In this document: positions 8,976 to 14,948 of the stretch, one piece after another
Numbering within the stretch: the stretch's first letter is position 1
Layout: each line of letters starts with the position of its first letter
Sequence record: OR493421.1
Reading direction: 5' to 3' (one strand)
Length of the DNA: 64,000 nucleotides
Translations under genes and position numbers: made by a program
Notes under the pieces: generated by a model
Database searches by the model: none
Told to the model about the DNA's origin: nothing
What the model saw: only the letters and a program-made list of their open reading frames with translations

Positions 8976-9152
8976 TTAAACGACTTCTTCTTTAGAGAAG
9001 AGATGCTCAACGTCAGAACGCATCCAACGCATATTTTTCCCCTCGCTAACGAAAGGCTGGGGGACAGTACCTTTGCTAATACGAATTTTCAGGGTTTTAA
9101 CGGAAATACCCAGAAGTTTAGCTAACTCTTTAAGACTGATCAGTGGTTGCAT
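8976..9152 (-). CDS. AlpA/excisionase-like HTH DNA-binding protein (58 aa, not in ORF track)
   Basis: Hand translation MQPLISLKELAKLLGISVKTLKIRISKGTVPQPFVSEGKNMRWMRSDVEHLFSKEEVV; ATG directly follows stop of 9153-10043. Confidence 0.8.
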   Translation of the reverse strand: MQPLISLKELAKLLGISVKTLKIRISKGTVPQPFVSEGKNMRWMRSDVEHLFSKEEVV

Positions 9153-10043
9153 TTATTTACCTTTAGTAGCTTCAGTAGTAGCGTATTTTTTGAGGAAATG
9201 ACGAGGAGCCCCACGGCGATAGATAATCGCTAAGAAATCCTCTTCGGACATATCAATGTCAAAACGAATATTGAATTGAACGTGTAATGCTTTAGCACGT
9301 TCGATATCTTCTCTCGTTCTTACGTTTGTGGGAAACAAACACAATAACGAGGTTAATGTGTTTAGAGCCAAAGCGTATTGTGAGTAAGTTGTGATTTTCT
9401 TTTCACCGGGACGGAGTTCTCTAACGTATTTGCTGAGTAACTCAGGAATAGGCATAACCCCGTTAAGAAACGCGTCCACGTCCTTATCGGAGAAAACAAT
9501 TCCAAACTCGCGCTTAAACCGTTCGATGCAAATAACATCCCCGTATAGGAACTCTCTTGAAGCATTTCCTAGAGAGTGATGTCGATGATAAAAGGCGGCC
9601 AGCGCCTCGTAAAGTTTATCGTGAAATTCATCAGAGACGGGCTTGCGGTGCATGACTTTCATACTTTCGGCCATTGTCCGACATGCCGCCTCAAGCGCAT
9701 GCATGTTAACCTTCCCGGTAGTAATTGAAATACCGTTTTGAATAACGGTATCTTTACCCTTTAGACTTTTCATCGCGGGGATCAGGAGAAGGAATCGGGT
9801 CCTTGTTGATCGTAGCTGTCTCGGCTGTTGTAGTTGGGAGTGTTTAATAAAGCTTGCAGGCATTGGTTCACCGGGCTCTAAAAGATGAGGGTGCCCAAAA
9901 CGATCGTACCAATACCGCGAAGAATGCTTTAATCTTCCAGTAGGCTGTTCATTTCTTGATTTATTCTTATCCGATGGGTCATTCGGATTAAACTCCACAA
10001 CGACATTGTCTGGAGAGATGACTACTTTAATTTCTTTTTTCAT
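9153..10043 (-). CDS. hypothetical protein
   Basis: 296 aa ORF, AGGGA SD. Confidence 0.8.
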   Translation of the reverse strand: MKKEIKVVISPDNVVVEFNPNDPSDKNKSRNEQPTGRLKHSSRYWYDRFGHPHLLEPGEPMPASFIKHSQLQQPRQLRSTRTRFLLLIPAMKSLKGKDTVIQNGISITTGKVNMHALEAACRTMAESMKVMHRKPVSDEFHDKLYEALAAFYHRHHSLGNASREFLYGDVICIERFKREFGIVFSDKDVDAFLNGVMPIPELLSKYVRELRPGEKKITTYSQYALALNTLTSLLCLFPTNVRTREDIERAKALHVQFNIRFDIDMSEEDFLAIIYRRGAPRHFLKKYATTEATKGK

Positions 10044-10068
10044 ACCAAATATCCCTAAAAATGAATGA

Positions 10069-10854
10069 CTACGCGACGCTTTTAAGTTTATCTAGAGCAA
10101 TAAACTTGGCTCTTGATCTCGCCAGGAGTGTGCGTTCTGTTTCTGGTCCTTTGCGATAAGACTCTCCGATCACTTTGTAATCGTTCTTATCCACCAGTAC
10201 GCAGATCAGAATACCGGAATAGATATCCCTGACGTGATCTTTGAGTTCATGATCCATCGTGGCTTCTTTAGCAGTGAAGTAAGACTCGTGTTTGATGGTG
10301 GTTACTACCCGGCGAGCTTTCAGAGTTTCCTCTACTGCGAACGCAATAGCCTTTTCGATTTTGTGAACACCCTCCCGTGATTCGTATTCGGTAGGATTAT
10401 TCAGGAGAAAATCGATTTCTTTAGGATGCGGTTCACACATTATCCCGCAGAATTCTTTTACGAGATAAGCGCCTACCAGATCGCACGGCATAAACTCTTC
10501 TACGAGGGTCTCAGGTGTTAAAACCACCTCACTGATACGATCACCCCATTTAGATTTAAAACTTGATATATCGTGTCCTGTGGGGTATTCGGTATCGAAG
10601 ATATCGCTACCGATAGTGACCCAGGCGTGAAGAGTATTGCGAGCCATTCCAACGTCAACATCCAGTCGACGATTCAAAACGGAACTTACCGCTAAAGCGG
10701 CTACCGCGCAATCTCCGTTATTAATCGCAACCGAAGCGCTATGCATGGTTCGCCTTACATCATACATGCCTTCCTCGAATTTATTCCAGAAGTAGGTAAA
10801 CCATTCGAAAGTATTCAGGATGGTCAGGCGATCTTTAAGCTGGGTCTCTAACAT
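10069..10854 (-). CDS. putative transglutaminase-like (Cys-His-Asp) domain fused to Gp49/66-like C-terminal domain
   Basis: GDCAVAAL, LHAWVTIG, IFDTE triad; C-term KHESYFTAKEA...ILICVLVDKNDYKVIGES...ARSRA resembles Phage_gp49_66. Confidence 0.55.
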   Translation of the reverse strand: MLETQLKDRLTILNTFEWFTYFWNKFEEGMYDVRRTMHSASVAINNGDCAVAALAVSSVLNRRLDVDVGMARNTLHAWVTIGSDIFDTEYPTGHDISSFKSKWGDRISEVVLTPETLVEEFMPCDLVGAYLVKEFCGIMCEPHPKEIDFLLNNPTEYESREGVHKIEKAIAFAVEETLKARRVVTTIKHESYFTAKEATMDHELKDHVRDIYSGILICVLVDKNDYKVIGESYRKGPETERTLLARSRAKFIALDKLKSVA

Positions 10855-11372
10855 TACCGAACTCCTTTATTCTTAACTTTCAAGAAATACCGCGGTGGAT
10901 TTTCTAATGTCAGGCAGTAACCTACGACATTGTCGGGATGTGGACGAGAGTCATCCACATCAATCAGTTCAACCGAGCCAGGAATGACACCCATTTCGGT
11001 AGTGAGTGTTATTCCTATTTGCATCGCCATGAGCTGATAAACGCGTTCTTCTACTTCTAAGAACGTGTATTCGTTGGTGCTAAAGACAGGAGGATCCAGT
11101 TCGGCTAAAGCCACACTTTTAGGCATAACCAACTTGGATTGATCAATTGGGATATTTACTCCTGCGATAAGCGGGACTCCGTTTAAGTCTTTGATGGGAT
11201 TGAACATCCCATCGGTGTTCCCGACATGACTGTTTAGCCATTTGACAATAGCTTTCACCATACCAGCCGGTGTGACGGGTTCGCCGTTGGACTCACTGGA
11301 AAAATTAAACTGTGTTATCTCCAGCTTGTTATCTTTATTAACGGTCAGGTTCCCAAATCTAACGACTTTCAT
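10854..11372 (-). CDS. hypothetical protein
   Basis: 172 aa ORF. Confidence 0.75.
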   Translation of the reverse strand: MKVVRFGNLTVNKDNKLEITQFNFSSESNGEPVTPAGMVKAIVKWLNSHVGNTDGMFNPIKDLNGVPLIAGVNIPIDQSKLVMPKSVALAELDPPVFSTNEYTFLEVEERVYQLMAMQIGITLTTEMGVIPGSVELIDVDDSRPHPDNVVGYCLTLENPPRYFLKVKNKGVR

Positions 11373-11382
11373 GTGTTACCCC

Positions 11383-11685
11383 TTAATCACGATCGACCAA
11401 CACGATGCCTTCTTCCATCCCGTCGGCGGCTACACCCAACAGAACACAGTGTAAACGATCAGGAGCCGGCCAAGCGCAGCCGTGGAAGATGTCAGTTCGG
11501 CCCTCATCATCCACCCAGTTACCGGCTTCAGAATTGGTTTCGACTTCCCATTCGAAGGTATTTCCGTCTGCGTCGATATGAGGGTGGGTCAGCAATGCGG
11601 TGTTGGTGTCAGGGGCTACAACGACCATACCGTTGATATCTTCGTCGCCAGTAAATTCCATTGGTTTAACCAAATAAATATTCAT
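11383..11685 (-). CDS. conserved phage hypothetical protein (paralog of 17946-18257)
   Basis: MNIYLV..VVVAPD..A..THP...W..LHCVLLG. Confidence 0.75.
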   Translation of the reverse strand: MNIYLVKPMEFTGDEDINGMVVVAPDTNTALLTHPHIDADGNTFEWEVETNSEAGNWVDDEGRTDIFHGCAWPAPDRLHCVLLGVAADGMEEGIVLVDRD

Positions 11686-11728
11686 GTTGTTCTCTCCTAA
11701 AAAAGATTATGGTTTGTTCTACATAAGG

Positions 11729-11757
11729 ATAATAAAGGTCTGTTTTTATTTACATGT
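11729..11757 (-). promoter_or_regulatory. candidate phage promoter ACATGTAA-N15-TATTAT
   Basis: Minus strand acATGTAA ataaaaacagacctt TATTAT ccttat GTAGA; immediately downstream of terminator. Confidence 0.6.
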
Positions 11758-11762
11758 GCAAT

Positions 11763-11793
11763 AACTCCTACTCCCTTATCGGGAGTAGGAGTT
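11763..11793 (-). terminator. repeated terminator hairpin (copy 1)
   Basis: CTCCTACTCCC-TTATC-GGGAGTAGGAG, identical 27-mer at 31690-31716. Confidence 0.8.
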
Positions 11794-11801
11794 AGATTGA
11801 C

Positions 11802-12317
11802 TCAGCGGGTAACTTGTTTGAAAAGACCTAAATGTTCTTTATAGTTGAAAACGGAAGCGTATTTCTTGAAGCTATGAGTGAAGCTGCACCCGTCGTTGTC
11901 GTACTTTAAGGTGACTTGAACGATGTCGTCTTCTATTTTACCTGGGTCTCTAGCAAGACGTACTTCCAGATAATACTCTACCCCCGATTCACCCGTTTTC
12001 CAATGCTTAAGGAAACCCTCCGAAAGAACAGAAGAACGCTCTACGCTATGATTACCGTCAATTAATAAACGGGCTTTTATCAACGATTCACAAATAGTTA
12101 AGCGCAGATCGCCGGTTAACCATTCACTATGAATCGGGGAGAAGAGTCGAACTCCGATATAAGCGAAGTCGAGCGCTTGAGTGAGATTAGGTTTAGAGGC
12201 CAGCAGATAATCACCCCAATAAACCTTAACGTTATACCCACACCCTTCTCGATACCCTACGCAGGAAAGATTACCTAAATTATACAGTGGAATACGAACA
12301 ACGTTTTCTTTAGCCAT
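11802..12317 (-). CDS. hypothetical protein (start corrected to MAKENV)
   Basis: GGAGAAATAAAA precedes ATG at 12317. Confidence 0.7.
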   Translation of the reverse strand: MAKENVVRIPLYNLGNLSCVGYREGCGYNVKVYWGDYLLASKPNLTQALDFAYIGVRLFSPIHSEWLTGDLRLTICESLIKARLLIDGNHSVERSSVLSEGFLKHWKTGESGVEYYLEVRLARDPGKIEDDIVQVTLKYDNDGCSFTHSFKKYASVFNYKEHLGLFKQVTR

Positions 12318-12415
12318 TTTTATTTCTCCGATATTTACGAAAGGAATGAGAGTAACCCACAAGATCACTCTCACCTAGGTCTACTGACCATACTATTAAA
12401 TTTAATTACGCTTCG

Positions 12416-13117
12416 TTATCCGATGACCAATTCTTCGTAAAACTTAACATAGTCCGATTCCGAAGGCGACCAAATCTGAGTGGCTCGATCAAGATCACTC
12501 ATAACTTCAGAACCCTCTCCCGCGCCCCAACGACGAATTACCTGCATGGCGACACCGATTGCGTTCTGGTAGGAATCCGATTCCCCCAATCCACTCAAAC
12601 CAGTGTACGACAGCGCGATAGAGGCCAGATGTACAAGTTGATAAAGCTCGCTGATCGCGTTCACGTTGTAATCGTAAATCCCCGCTCTTTTGAGCTCCCG
12701 CAAGAGCGTAGTGAAGAAAAAGGGATTGCTGTCGAGCTGATCCGCGCTGGCAATTGTTAAATCAGATCGGAAACTAAGATATCCCCATTGACGATAGGGG
12801 ATATCGTGCCTAAAATGGTAATCGATTTTGGTTTCAGGTTTCATCATCATGATGGCGATATCGATTCGAGCAATCTCGTTGCGATGAATAGCAAAATCCA
12901 AGGTCCTCGCCAAATCTTCAGAATACATGGCGCGGAGGACGTTATCAAATCGCTCTTCATCATACCCACGGGCAGCATTTTGGGTAGGGTCACTAAAAAC
13001 CCCCTCCCATTTTGCTGAACCGATCTTCTTAATCGCTTTGCTCACCAGCTTAAATGATTTAGAGTGATTAAAGAAGACGTCGTCTGAAGTGGCATTAATG
13101 TCATAGTTCTTACGCAT
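12416..13117 (-). CDS. hypothetical protein
   Basis: 233 aa ORF, AAGGA SD. Confidence 0.8.
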   Translation of the reverse strand: MRKNYDINATSDDVFFNHSKSFKLVSKAIKKIGSAKWEGVFSDPTQNAARGYDEERFDNVLRAMYSEDLARTLDFAIHRNEIARIDIAIMMMKPETKIDYHFRHDIPYRQWGYLSFRSDLTIASADQLDSNPFFFTTLLRELKRAGIYDYNVNAISELYQLVHLASIALSYTGLSGLGESDSYQNAIGVAMQVIRRWGAGEGSEVMSDLDRATQIWSPSESDYVKFYEELVIG

Positions 13118-13142: not shown

Positions 13143-13838
13143 TTATTTATTTATTTTAACAACAAACCACATGTAAGCGCCGTACAGCGCGTTACCGGTG
13201 ATGACCGTCCACATCGCTACCATGGACCAAGAACCGGGTTGGTCTAAAGCAGGAATGACCCACATGTAAATAGAAGCGACATCGACCAGTATCCAGAGTA
13301 ACCATTGTTCGGAATACTGTTTAACCATCAAGCCCATAGCGATTAAGCTCGCTACCATCGTAAACGCATCTAATACAGGTGAACTATCCCCGATATGACG
13401 AAGGAACAAGCTTACTGCAAAGGTCCCTGCCAAAACAACGAACGTCATCTGAAGGAACTGAAGGAGTGACAATCGTTTAACAGATACGTCAACGCCAGCA
13501 TCAGTCTTATTCAGCAATGTTTTACGCCATTCGTAAATACCCCAGAACTGGAATCCGAAGTAAATGACGTTAAGCGCCATGTTGCCGTAGAGTTGTTGCT
13601 TGTAGGAAACGATCGCGTAGAGAACTACCCCTAATAACCCCCAATAGTAATTGGAGAGTCGACCTTTAGCAACAAGAATAACACAGACGACGTTAAATAT
13701 TCCAGCCCAGAATTCCAGTGGCGAAGCGGAAATACTCCCGGCCACAACAGCAGCGATGGCTACGACTAACCACAGCCATTCCTTACGACTCCATCCGCTC
13801 TGGAAATCAGTATAGATTACGCTAAAAAGTTCTTTCAT
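13143..13838 (-). CDS. pnuC: nicotinamide riboside transporter PnuC
   Basis: Multi-TM protein; CVILVAKGRLSNYYWG, LDAFT, EQWLLWILVD motifs; adjacent to nadR. Confidence 0.93.
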   Translation of the reverse strand: MKELFSVIYTDFQSGWSRKEWLWLVVAIAAVVAGSISASPLEFWAGIFNVVCVILVAKGRLSNYYWGLLGVVLYAIVSYKQQLYGNMALNVIYFGFQFWGIYEWRKTLLNKTDAGVDVSVKRLSLLQFLQMTFVVLAGTFAVSLFLRHIGDSSPVLDAFTMVASLIAMGLMVKQYSEQWLLWILVDVASIYMWVIPALDQPGSWSMVAMWTVITGNALYGAYMWFVVKINK

Positions 13839-14948
13839 TTAAAAGTCACCTGAGTTAACACGTTGAGTGAAGGTTTTGATAATTTCGTAAGCCTGGTCGA
13901 ACCTAACTTTGTAGTCGGAGGAAGAAATATGGAACGTTCTTCCTTCCGGGAACTGGTTAGGGAACTCCAGACTCATGAGGTTAAATAATTCAGTTGTCCG
14001 TTGTCTTTCGGGATTACTACGAAGGCCGTCATCAACCCACTCTACAGTAGGTTCGAGTACGATGACCAGATCGTAGTTTTCCTCAGCCGCTATCGCAGAG
14101 ACGATACGATTAGGTTTCCCTTCATACAACCGATGGTAGTATTCGGTAATGAACGCATTCGTATCCACAATGCAAATGCGATTAGCCGAACGCATGGCCT
14201 GGATTTCCAGTTCCTTATGGCGATAAGCGATGATTGGGTAATCGTCGCTACGGAGTGTCGATTCTGAACCACAGAGCTCAGTCTCGCAATACGTCCGACC
14301 GTACTCCTCTACCCAGGACGTATTAAACATCTTAGCCAGATTCTTGACCATGACGCTTTTACCGCAAGATTCCTGGCCGAGGATGACAATCCGTTTGGTG
14401 TAGTCCTTACGAACAATAGAAGGGAGGTATTCCCAGTTGGCGTAAAGATTCTCACGAATTTTAGTCGCACTAATGGGAACCGCTGTACGATGCGCATCAA
14501 CCACGACGTGACTGACTTCAGGAAGATGCTCCTCGTAACCTTTATCGTAATCGATTTCACTACTGAAAATGGCCACGGTCTGAGCAATCCGACGAGTGTT
14601 GTCGACTGATCCGATTCCTTTATAGTTCTTGTGCTGTTCCTCAGTGTAGATCTTCCTGAGGAGGTTGCAGTAAGCGCTCCATCCGTTGGGAAATTCCGGG
14701 ATGTCATCTTCGATGATATATTTAATATCAATGTGGTCCGAATCAGCGTAATGCTGCTGTAACCAACGAAGACGGTTAGTGAACGTCAACGCCTTCTGAT
14801 CACGAGGACATTGTTGCGCTAACCAGCGACTGTCGTGACTTAACACAACGATAACTTTCTTAGCCTGGAGGGAGGCTTGGGTGATGAGGTTGATATGACC
14901 CTGAGTGAGCGGGGCGAATTTACCAACGACGATGCCGATATCAAACAT
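13839..14948 (-). CDS. nadR: NadR-type bifunctional NMN adenylyltransferase / ribosylnicotinamide kinase (no HTH)
   Basis: GKFAPLTQGH nucleotidyltransferase motif, ISATKIR, P-loop GQESCGKS, EYGRTY, WVDDGLR. Confidence 0.95.
   Translation of the reverse strand: MFDIGIVVGKFAPLTQGHINLITQASLQAKKVIVVLSHDSRWLAQQCPRDQKALTFTNRLRWLQQHYADSDHIDIKYIIEDDIPEFPNGWSAYCNLLRKIYTEEQHKNYKGIGSVDNTRRIAQTVAIFSSEIDYDKGYEEHLPEVSHVVVDAHRTAVPISATKIRENLYANWEYLPSIVRKDYTKRIVILGQESCGKSVMVKNLAKMFNTSWVEEYGRTYCETELCGSESTLRSDDYPIIAYRHKELEIQAMRSANRICIVDTNAFITEYYHRLYEGKPNRIVSAIAAEENYDLVIVLEPTVEWVDDGLRSNPERQRTTELFNLMSLEFPNQFPEGRTFHISSSDYKVRFDQAYEIIKTFTQRVNSGDF

Follow-up and report, generated by a model that had tools for sequence, protein, structure and literature searches.

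The question raised by one gene of Klebsiella phage YC1 is whether a domain related to the Acb4 sponges has been joined, within a single phage polypeptide, to a domain of enzyme type, and what such a protein might do. The gene occupies positions 10069 to 10854, on the minus strand, of a 64,000-nucleotide segment of record OR493421.1 (the window, meaning the whole stretch of DNA analysed here). An earlier note, made from the sequence alone, had described its product as a Cys-His-Asp enzyme domain of transglutaminase/papain type fused to a Gp49/66 (Acb4-like) domain and, on this basis, as a candidate bifunctional anti-defence protein. The architecture proposed in that note is supported by our analysis. 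The gene encodes a two-domain protein, intact and selected, in which a phrog_6870 domain is followed by a divergent, shortened domain of the Acb4 family. The gene and its two parts are:

10069..10854, minus strand: whole gene, 261 codons plus TAG stop, from the open reading frame (ORF) list; WNY41099.1 of YC1, annotated as hypothetical protein

10366..10854, minus strand: N-terminal domain, amino acids (aa) 1-163; phrog_6870 match; putative Cys-His-Asp thiol enzyme

10072..10365, minus strand: C-terminal domain, aa 164-261; divergent, C-terminally shortened Gp49/gp66 domain (PF13876, Acb4-like), from BLASTP, hhalign and phrog_322

A phrog_6870 domain joined to an Acb4-family domain

The resemblance of the C-terminus to Gp49/66, noticed earlier in the letters, is borne out by several kinds of comparison. 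With BLASTP, aa 164-257 align to the gp66 protein of phage vB_EcoP-683R2, itself a PF13876 protein at 1.7e-34, with 31% identity over 99 aa (E=1e-8). When a four-sequence alignment of the domain was compared with the gp66 family by hhalign, the probability was 94.4% (E=8.4e-8) and the score 45.3; of 30 column shuffles none scored above 22, and the reversed sequences reached 11. A hidden Markov model (HMM) made from 120 gp66-type proteins gives 20.9 bits on aa 180-256 and matches this ORF only among the 639 six-frame ORFs of the window. The sole PHROG match of the C-terminal piece is phrog_322 (E=4.6e-4), which is the gp66 PHROG (gp66 itself, 7.7e-62). A tblastn search with aa 160-261 against 50,697 phage records returned 146 weak matches (<60% identity) that cover 78-92% of the piece, and among the annotated ones listed is Sf6 gene 66, which gave the Gp49/66 family one half of its name. 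The ~98 aa of the domain align over nearly its whole length with gp66-type members, and of the 56 columns with a conservation of at least 90% in the gp66-type set the window protein agrees in 25. Because BLASTP, hhalign measured against its shuffles, the gp66 HMM, phrog_322 and tblastn agree, we consider the C-terminal domain on sequence grounds to be a true but divergent homologue of Gp49/gp66 (PF13876, Acb4 family).

That Acb4 is a member of PF13876, which the earlier note had also stated, is correct according to Chang et al.: SPO1 Acb4 is a 96-aa tetrameric sponge for 3′3′-cGAMP (cyclic GMP–AMP) with a fold resembling the dsRBD (the domain for binding double-stranded RNA; PDB 9E4W), and some of its homologues carry extra extensions (10.1101/2024.12.30.630793). 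A joint profile of the window domain and 30 gp66-type proteins matches 9e4w_A without gaps at E=5e-8. When aa 160-261 were modelled from the family alignment, the predicted local distance difference test score (pLDDT) was 83; the predicted helix, three-strand, helix build is like that of Acb4, which is also the best fold match of the model in the PDB. The top 13 PDB matches found by Foldseek are all 9E4W chains (E 0.025-0.1, 83-99 aligned columns), with template modelling (TM) scores of 0.41-0.61 (12 chains at 0.49-0.61), and the next match has a probability of 0.25. A model of the domain made free of family sequences has the same order of elements at a pLDDT of 37-64. In SPO1 Acb4 the fold makes up a stand-alone protein of ~100 aa, whereas here it is part of a protein of 261 aa.

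Weak matches to the NCBIfam model mobB were seen over aa 176-231 (window 10162-10329, minus strand) in four full-length relatives, the best with E=7e-4. They lie far below the cut-off of the model and are probably spurious.

The N-terminal domain belongs to another family altogether. Its aa 12-176 match phrog_6870, a group listed with function unknown, at E=5e-27 over profile positions 10-170 of 174, that is, as a full-length member. AlphaFold2 models the domain with pLDDT >90 across about aa 10-180, and the fold matches in BFVD are proteins of Serratia phage Moabite and Klebsiella phage FBKp24 and one unnamed protein, all uncharacterised (TMt 0.84-0.87). A profile search of a library of 1.84 billion representative proteins at E<=0.001 gave 30 relatives, each of which aligns to positions ~10-176 only; these were N-domain relatives throughout, and a relative of the C-terminal domain was not found at that threshold. 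Stand-alone genes of ~165-240 aa for the N-terminal domain are present on contigs of 54-307 kb (tblastn and IMG/VR scans), and their carriers include the Erwinia Ea35-70/RAY group, Pseudomonas OBP and Salmonella SA002. The domain belongs to a small, rare family known so far from jumbo phages only, several of which are nucleus-forming. The window domain is a clear member beside RAY gp117, OBP gp078 and the Moabite and FBKp24 proteins, all from jumbo phages; these four, of about 165-190 aa, differ from it in standing alone, with neither an Acb4-like tail nor an Acb4-like neighbour. Among 33 N-domain relatives the tail occurs in the Miami-like clade only.

The gene is not the product of a frameshift or of faulty annotation. 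The 3.5 kb around it are 100% identical to Klebsiella phage YC1 (OR493421.1, 252.5 kb), as is its product to WNY41099.1, and 86-97% identical to the corresponding regions of Miami, KPN8, BUCTxx100, phiKp_32 and VB_ZK_P1. Seven records of Miami-like jumbo phages and three metagenome clusters carry the same frame uninterrupted, with 260-261 aa. An artefact was rejected since the seven records come from several laboratories. A comparison of four phages by the Nei-Gojobori method gave ratios of non-synonymous to synonymous divergence (dN/dS) of 0.08-0.14 in aa 1-160; those of aa 186-261 were 0.00-0.15. Both halves are therefore under purifying selection, the C-terminal part being constrained at least as much as the N-terminal one.

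Between the two halves the picture is different. In codons 161-185 (window 10300-10374, minus strand) the synonymous divergence from VB_ZK_P1 and phiKp_32 is 1.1-1.8, compared to 0.15-0.37 in both flanks. This peak in the inter-domain helix may mark a seam left by recombination where the domains meet; it comprises only 25 codons. An ENA contig of 1364 bp with a coverage of ~1 (L012) encodes an N-terminal domain 86% identical to that of the window, in which homology ends at aa 151 and after which the C-terminal domain is absent. Either the variant with the N-terminal domain alone is natural, or the contig is a chimeric low-coverage assembly.

The Cys-His-Asp set of the N-terminal domain

The N-terminal half contains, as read earlier from the letters, a Cys, a His and an Asp in this order, and the family alignment singles out the same three residues:

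10708..10710, minus strand: codon of Cys49, candidate nucleophile; Cys in 31/33 members; first residue of helix 49-63

10627..10629, minus strand: codon of His76; His in 31/33 members; directly before strand 77-81

10594..10596, minus strand: codon of Asp87; Asp in 31/33 members; directly after strand 84-86

In the alignment of 33 sequences the invariant or near-invariant residues are N45, G47, D48, C49, A53, H76, D87, G93, D125 and G128. The two members that have lost Cys49, His76 and Asp87 are the same for all three positions (P0025 and P0030). Being kept or lost jointly, the three behave like residues working as one unit. Their placement relative to the helix and the strands is taken from the AlphaFold2 model, in a part where pLDDT exceeds 90. 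In papain- and transglutaminase-like thiol enzymes the Cys opens a helix and the His and Asp lie on the strands after it; the window protein shares with them (PF13471) the order Cys, His, Asp, here spaced by 27 and 11 residues, and in the model the position of the Cys at a helix start. On the strength of the model and the conservation, the domain is likely to be a thiol enzyme.

Several members of the family carry additions of their own. P0025 (383 aa) and P0030 (385 aa) share a C-terminal extension of ~200 aa without family match, and these two proteins, which do not have the Cys, His and Asp, probably represent a pseudoenzyme branch. Other unexplained extensions are found on the N-terminal domain of P0019 (391 aa) and P0029 (507 aa).

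The gene surroundings of the family vary. A neighbour common to all N-domain loci was not found. In RAY, 15 bases separate gp117 (L013:2369-2908) from the preceding gp116, whose product is an HslU-like ATPase with reported localisation in the phage nucleus, and a similar-sized upstream homologue recurs at about -1.9 kb in a clade of five loci (L015-L018, L020) and nowhere else. An HslU-like ATPase was considered as a conserved partner of the domain and rejected: the pairing holds in the RAY/Ea35-70 clade only, it is not present in the window, and the related gene of Miami lies ~55 kb away.

The proposed binding pocket and competing explanations

We favour, with a probability of about 0.4, a two-module counter-defence protein that combines a remodelled, basic sponge-like domain with a thiol enzyme, and we infer the following mechanism. 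The Acb4-like domain would oligomerise as Acb4 does and would bind an anionic, nucleotide-type host signal in its remodelled, more basic pocket. The thiol-enzyme domain would act separately on a host target, either a protein or a conjugate, as a protease, a deamidase or an isopeptidase. Such a protein would be a two-in-one counter-defence factor like the Tad2-Acb4 and Sequestin-Acb4 fusions, with the enzyme replacing the second sponge.

For these precedents, a 2025 preprint shows that Acb4 is frequently fused to Tad2 or to PF21825 and that Thoeris and the cyclic oligonucleotide-based antiphage signalling system (CBASS) are both blocked by a Tad2-Acb4 fusion; PF21825 (Sequestin), which had been chosen for its fusions, proved to be a sponge itself; the fusion partners of sponges proved to be anti-defence proteins (10.1101/2025.07.12.664507). 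Among other PF13876 fusions we likewise found a Tad2-like partner (P0049) and PF21825 (P0044), with the domains confirmed by Pfam. Like Tad2-Acb4 (for example that of Pasteurella phage Pm86) and Sequestin-Acb4, the window protein carries an Acb4-type domain and a second module in one polypeptide encoded by a phage accessory gene. It differs from them in that the partner is an enzyme-like Cys-His-Asp domain of ~160 aa and not a small oligomeric sponge, and in that the Acb4-type domain is far more divergent. An enzyme-like fusion partner of Acb4 is mentioned neither in 10.1101/2025.07.12.664507 nor in 10.1101/2024.12.30.630793. Since both halves score below the Pfam thresholds, the window protein would be missing from Pfam architecture lists.

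The residues of Acb4 that contact the ligand were mapped through the ungapped coordinates of the joint profile and the alignment row of the window protein; the chain index equals the residue number used in the Acb4 paper plus 1, which fits all nine contacts:

Acb4 F48: window Y226, the guanine-stacking position, aromatic kept

Acb4 E49: window K227

Acb4 V56: window R234

Acb4 Y57: window K235

Acb4 F62: window E240

Acb4 N63: window R241

Acb4 I66: window L244, hydrophobic kept

Acb4 T70: window R248

Acb4 K81: window S259

A number of observations weigh against the proposed function. Only two of the nine ligand contacts are conservatively retained and five have become Lys or Arg. Where Acb4 has F62 and 30/30 gp66-type rows have Phe, the window protein has Glu. 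The protein also stops where Acb4, with its 96 residues, has reached residue ~83; the 30 gp66-type proteins extend 10-39 residues (median 11) past its end, which leaves the domain 10-13 residues short. Helix α5 at the C-terminus of Acb4 helps form the pocket (10.1101/2024.12.30.630793), and from this description the missing part would be that last helix. For the C-terminal domain as a whole, the PF13876 scores stay under the cut-off of 27 bits: the full-length protein has 14.0 bits (E=0.077), the piece 16.4 bits (E=0.013). A word-indexed protein search with the piece, restricted by its length window and by the small number of words in common, gave no match. The profile of the domain alone has no match to Acb4 9E4W in the PDB, so that its sequence link to Acb4 is a transitive one, running via the gp66-type proteins. 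Nor is the fold match to 9E4W, though supportive, an independent one, because the alignment behind the model contained gp66 family sequences.

The enzyme half has its own difficulties. Pfam Transglut_core3 (PF13471) is matched at aa 32-89 with 16.7 bits against a cut-off of 26 (E=0.0072). No solved structure resembles the N-terminal domain by fold, the best Foldseek E-value of the full-length model against the PDB being 2.3, and sequence and profile searches of the PDB with the whole protein or the N-family profile gave nothing relevant. Finally, the two domains show no independent linkage, since no Acb4-like gene, which would have favoured an origin by gene fusion, was found near the stand-alone N-domain genes, either within 5 kb in the 21 IMG/VR loci or within 3 kb in four GenBank phage records.

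With so few conservative contacts and the last 10-13 residues missing, the cGAMP pocket of Acb4 is not preserved as such. The window domain differs from SPO1 Acb4 by this truncation, by the Glu at F62, by the five Lys/Arg contacts and by its charge: aa 233-250 have a net charge of +4, compared to -1 to +1 in the 30 gp66-type proteins. Divergence by itself is no proof of lost binding, because gp66-type members are identical to SPO1 Acb4 at only 3/9 contacts. In view of the remodelled and markedly more basic pocket, the ligand would probably be bound otherwise than 3′3′-cGAMP is in SPO1 Acb4. The earlier note had named a missing Gp49/66 match or a missing pocket as grounds for dropping its reading; the homology was found, while the Acb4 pocket was not kept. 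Its reading of a bifunctional anti-defence protein is accordingly supported in the architecture, whereas the function remains inferred and is weakened by the sub-threshold Pfam score of the C-terminal domain, the missing residues and the changed contacts.

For the transglutaminase/papain triad of the note, residue conservation and placement in the secondary structure speak in favour; a significant family or fold match was not found. The weak Transglut_core3 match spans the Cys49-Asp87 stretch and is seen in only 2/33 family members. Equally weak YunG or YunG-like matches are found in three relatives and cover the same region in the one checked (P0029). Menin, which we take to have a transglutaminase-like domain, appears in the Foldseek list only at a probability of 0.10-0.13, and NCBIfam and PADLOC yielded nothing relevant to the enzyme assignment. 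Membership in a transglutaminase-like family is therefore not established. The Pfam check suggested in the note thus returned both expected families, each under its gathering threshold, and the C-terminal homology emerged from more sensitive comparison.

Could the C-terminal domain be no sponge at all? The main rival holds that it now serves purely as a module for oligomerisation or for the binding of nucleic acids (dsRBD-like), which assembles or targets the thiol enzyme. We regard this as possible, though somewhat doubtful. It would account for the non-conservative change of 7/9 contacts, for the Glu in place of a family-invariant Phe, and for the loss of the family's last residues; that Pfam aligns only positions 5-45 of the 82 in its model makes the ligand-binding half the least similar one, and a highly basic surface on a fold described as dsRBD-like by Chang et al. 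would fit RNA. However, the domain is almost invariant across the clade, basic residues included (dN 0.00-0.035), which exceeds the usual needs of a plain scaffold, and the low identity of contacts between SPO1 Acb4 and its gp66-type relatives again cautions against reading divergence as lost binding. A more radical explanation, that the likeness to Gp49/66 is due to chance or composition and that the tail is an unrelated small α/β domain, has hardly any credit with us. The PF13876 score below threshold, the library-wide search that returned no C-domain relative and the missing direct sequence match to 9E4W could all be cited for it, but it would have to explain away an hhalign score of which shuffled columns reach less than half, a family that is the only match in two independent libraries (Pfam and PHROGs), the 146 tblastn matches with Sf6 gene 66 among them, the end-to-end alignment to a real gp66 family member and the 25 shared conserved columns.

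For the N-terminal domain, Cys49, His76 and Asp87, perhaps together with Asp48 and Asp125, might form a structural or metal-binding site in a protein that is no thiol hydrolase or transferase. The lack of a significant match to an enzyme family or a solved enzyme structure would agree with this, as would the two additional invariant acidic residues nearby in the sequence. We nevertheless consider it unlikely, since thiol enzymes classically place the Cys where a helix begins and the His and Asp on strands after it, and the sole family-level hints, Transglut_core3 and YunG-like, align over just this stretch. Still less probable, in our opinion, is a signal-activated enzyme in which the thiol-enzyme domain is turned on once the Acb4-like domain has bound a host alarm nucleotide, one of the possibilities raised in the note. 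Its sole support is the architecture, a ligand-binding-type and an enzyme-type domain joined by one long helix (aa 160-183). Stand-alone N-terminal domains are the rule in the family, which argues that the enzyme does not need the C-terminal domain, and such regulation is not described for Acb4-family proteins in 10.1101/2024.12.30.630793 or 10.1101/2025.07.12.664507.

The two-module counter-defence protein can also be framed more boldly, in a version to which we give a low probability: phrog_6870 would represent a new class of counter-defence thiol enzymes, for example proteases or isopeptidases that act on a component of a nucleotide-signalling defence, and would be fused in Miami-like phages to a basic sponge for a non-canonical signal. 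If true, this would be the first enzyme-sponge chimera.

Genomic setting and significance

By its match coordinates the 64-kb window is the end of the YC1 record. Its relative Miami, a jumbo myophage of 253 kb, has no assigned function for the majority of its genes (PMC7844079), and a study of nucleus-forming phages takes Miami to be distantly related to Erwinia phage RAY (10.1101/2023.02.24.529968). One record labelled 'Stenotrophomonas phage BUCTxx100' (OR529409.1) is 96.6% identical over 3.5 kb (window 9000-12500), an unexpected host label for so close a relative. The gene lies within a long same-strand array of small genes lacking known function, and two further features precede it:

10862..10867, minus strand: Shine–Dalgarno-like AAGGAG, from reading of the sequence, six to eight bases before the start codon

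10854..11372, minus strand: upstream gene, 172 aa, from the ORF list; no Pfam, PHROG or PADLOC match

The Miami record annotates a ribosome-binding site at the position equivalent to AAGGAG. The start ATG (10852-10854) shares one base with the TAA stop of the upstream gene, which is apparently translationally coupled to the fusion gene, and a terminator-like site was not found between the latter and its neighbours on the same strand.

On the downstream side, a 296-aa gene (window 9153-10043, minus strand) has a weak match to the PARG helical domain (E=0.013) and is followed by a 58-aa gene (window 8976-9152, minus strand) of the HTH_17/excisionase-like type. In Miami, VB_ZK_P1 and phiKp_32 the gene that comes after the fusion gene is far longer, with at least 490 aa; since its length differs among these phages and the window, the spot is an indel polymorphism in the clade. 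Upstream, genes for a ribosylnicotinamide kinase and for a PnuC-like nicotinamide-riboside transporter are annotated in the YC1 record at window 13143-14948 (minus strand), 2.3 kb from the fusion gene and in the same array. These genes for the salvage of NAD+ near a sponge-like gene may hint at a counter-defence neighbourhood.

Sponge fusions are a known theme; what is new here is the partner, an uncharacterised enzyme-like domain of jumbo phages. Fusion to a known sponge has led to a new anti-defence family before, when Sequestin was found through fusions with Tad2 and Acb4. The same reasoning points here to an enzyme-like family of giant phages, many of whose carriers are nucleus-forming and whose counter-defence repertoire is poorly known: being joined to an Acb4-like sponge domain, the enzyme becomes a candidate counter-defence factor. 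The C-terminal domain in turn offers a natural example of how an Acb4-type pocket may drift, by truncation and by a shift to basic residues, under strong selection. Such drift bears on the specificity of sponges and on the defences that sense them.

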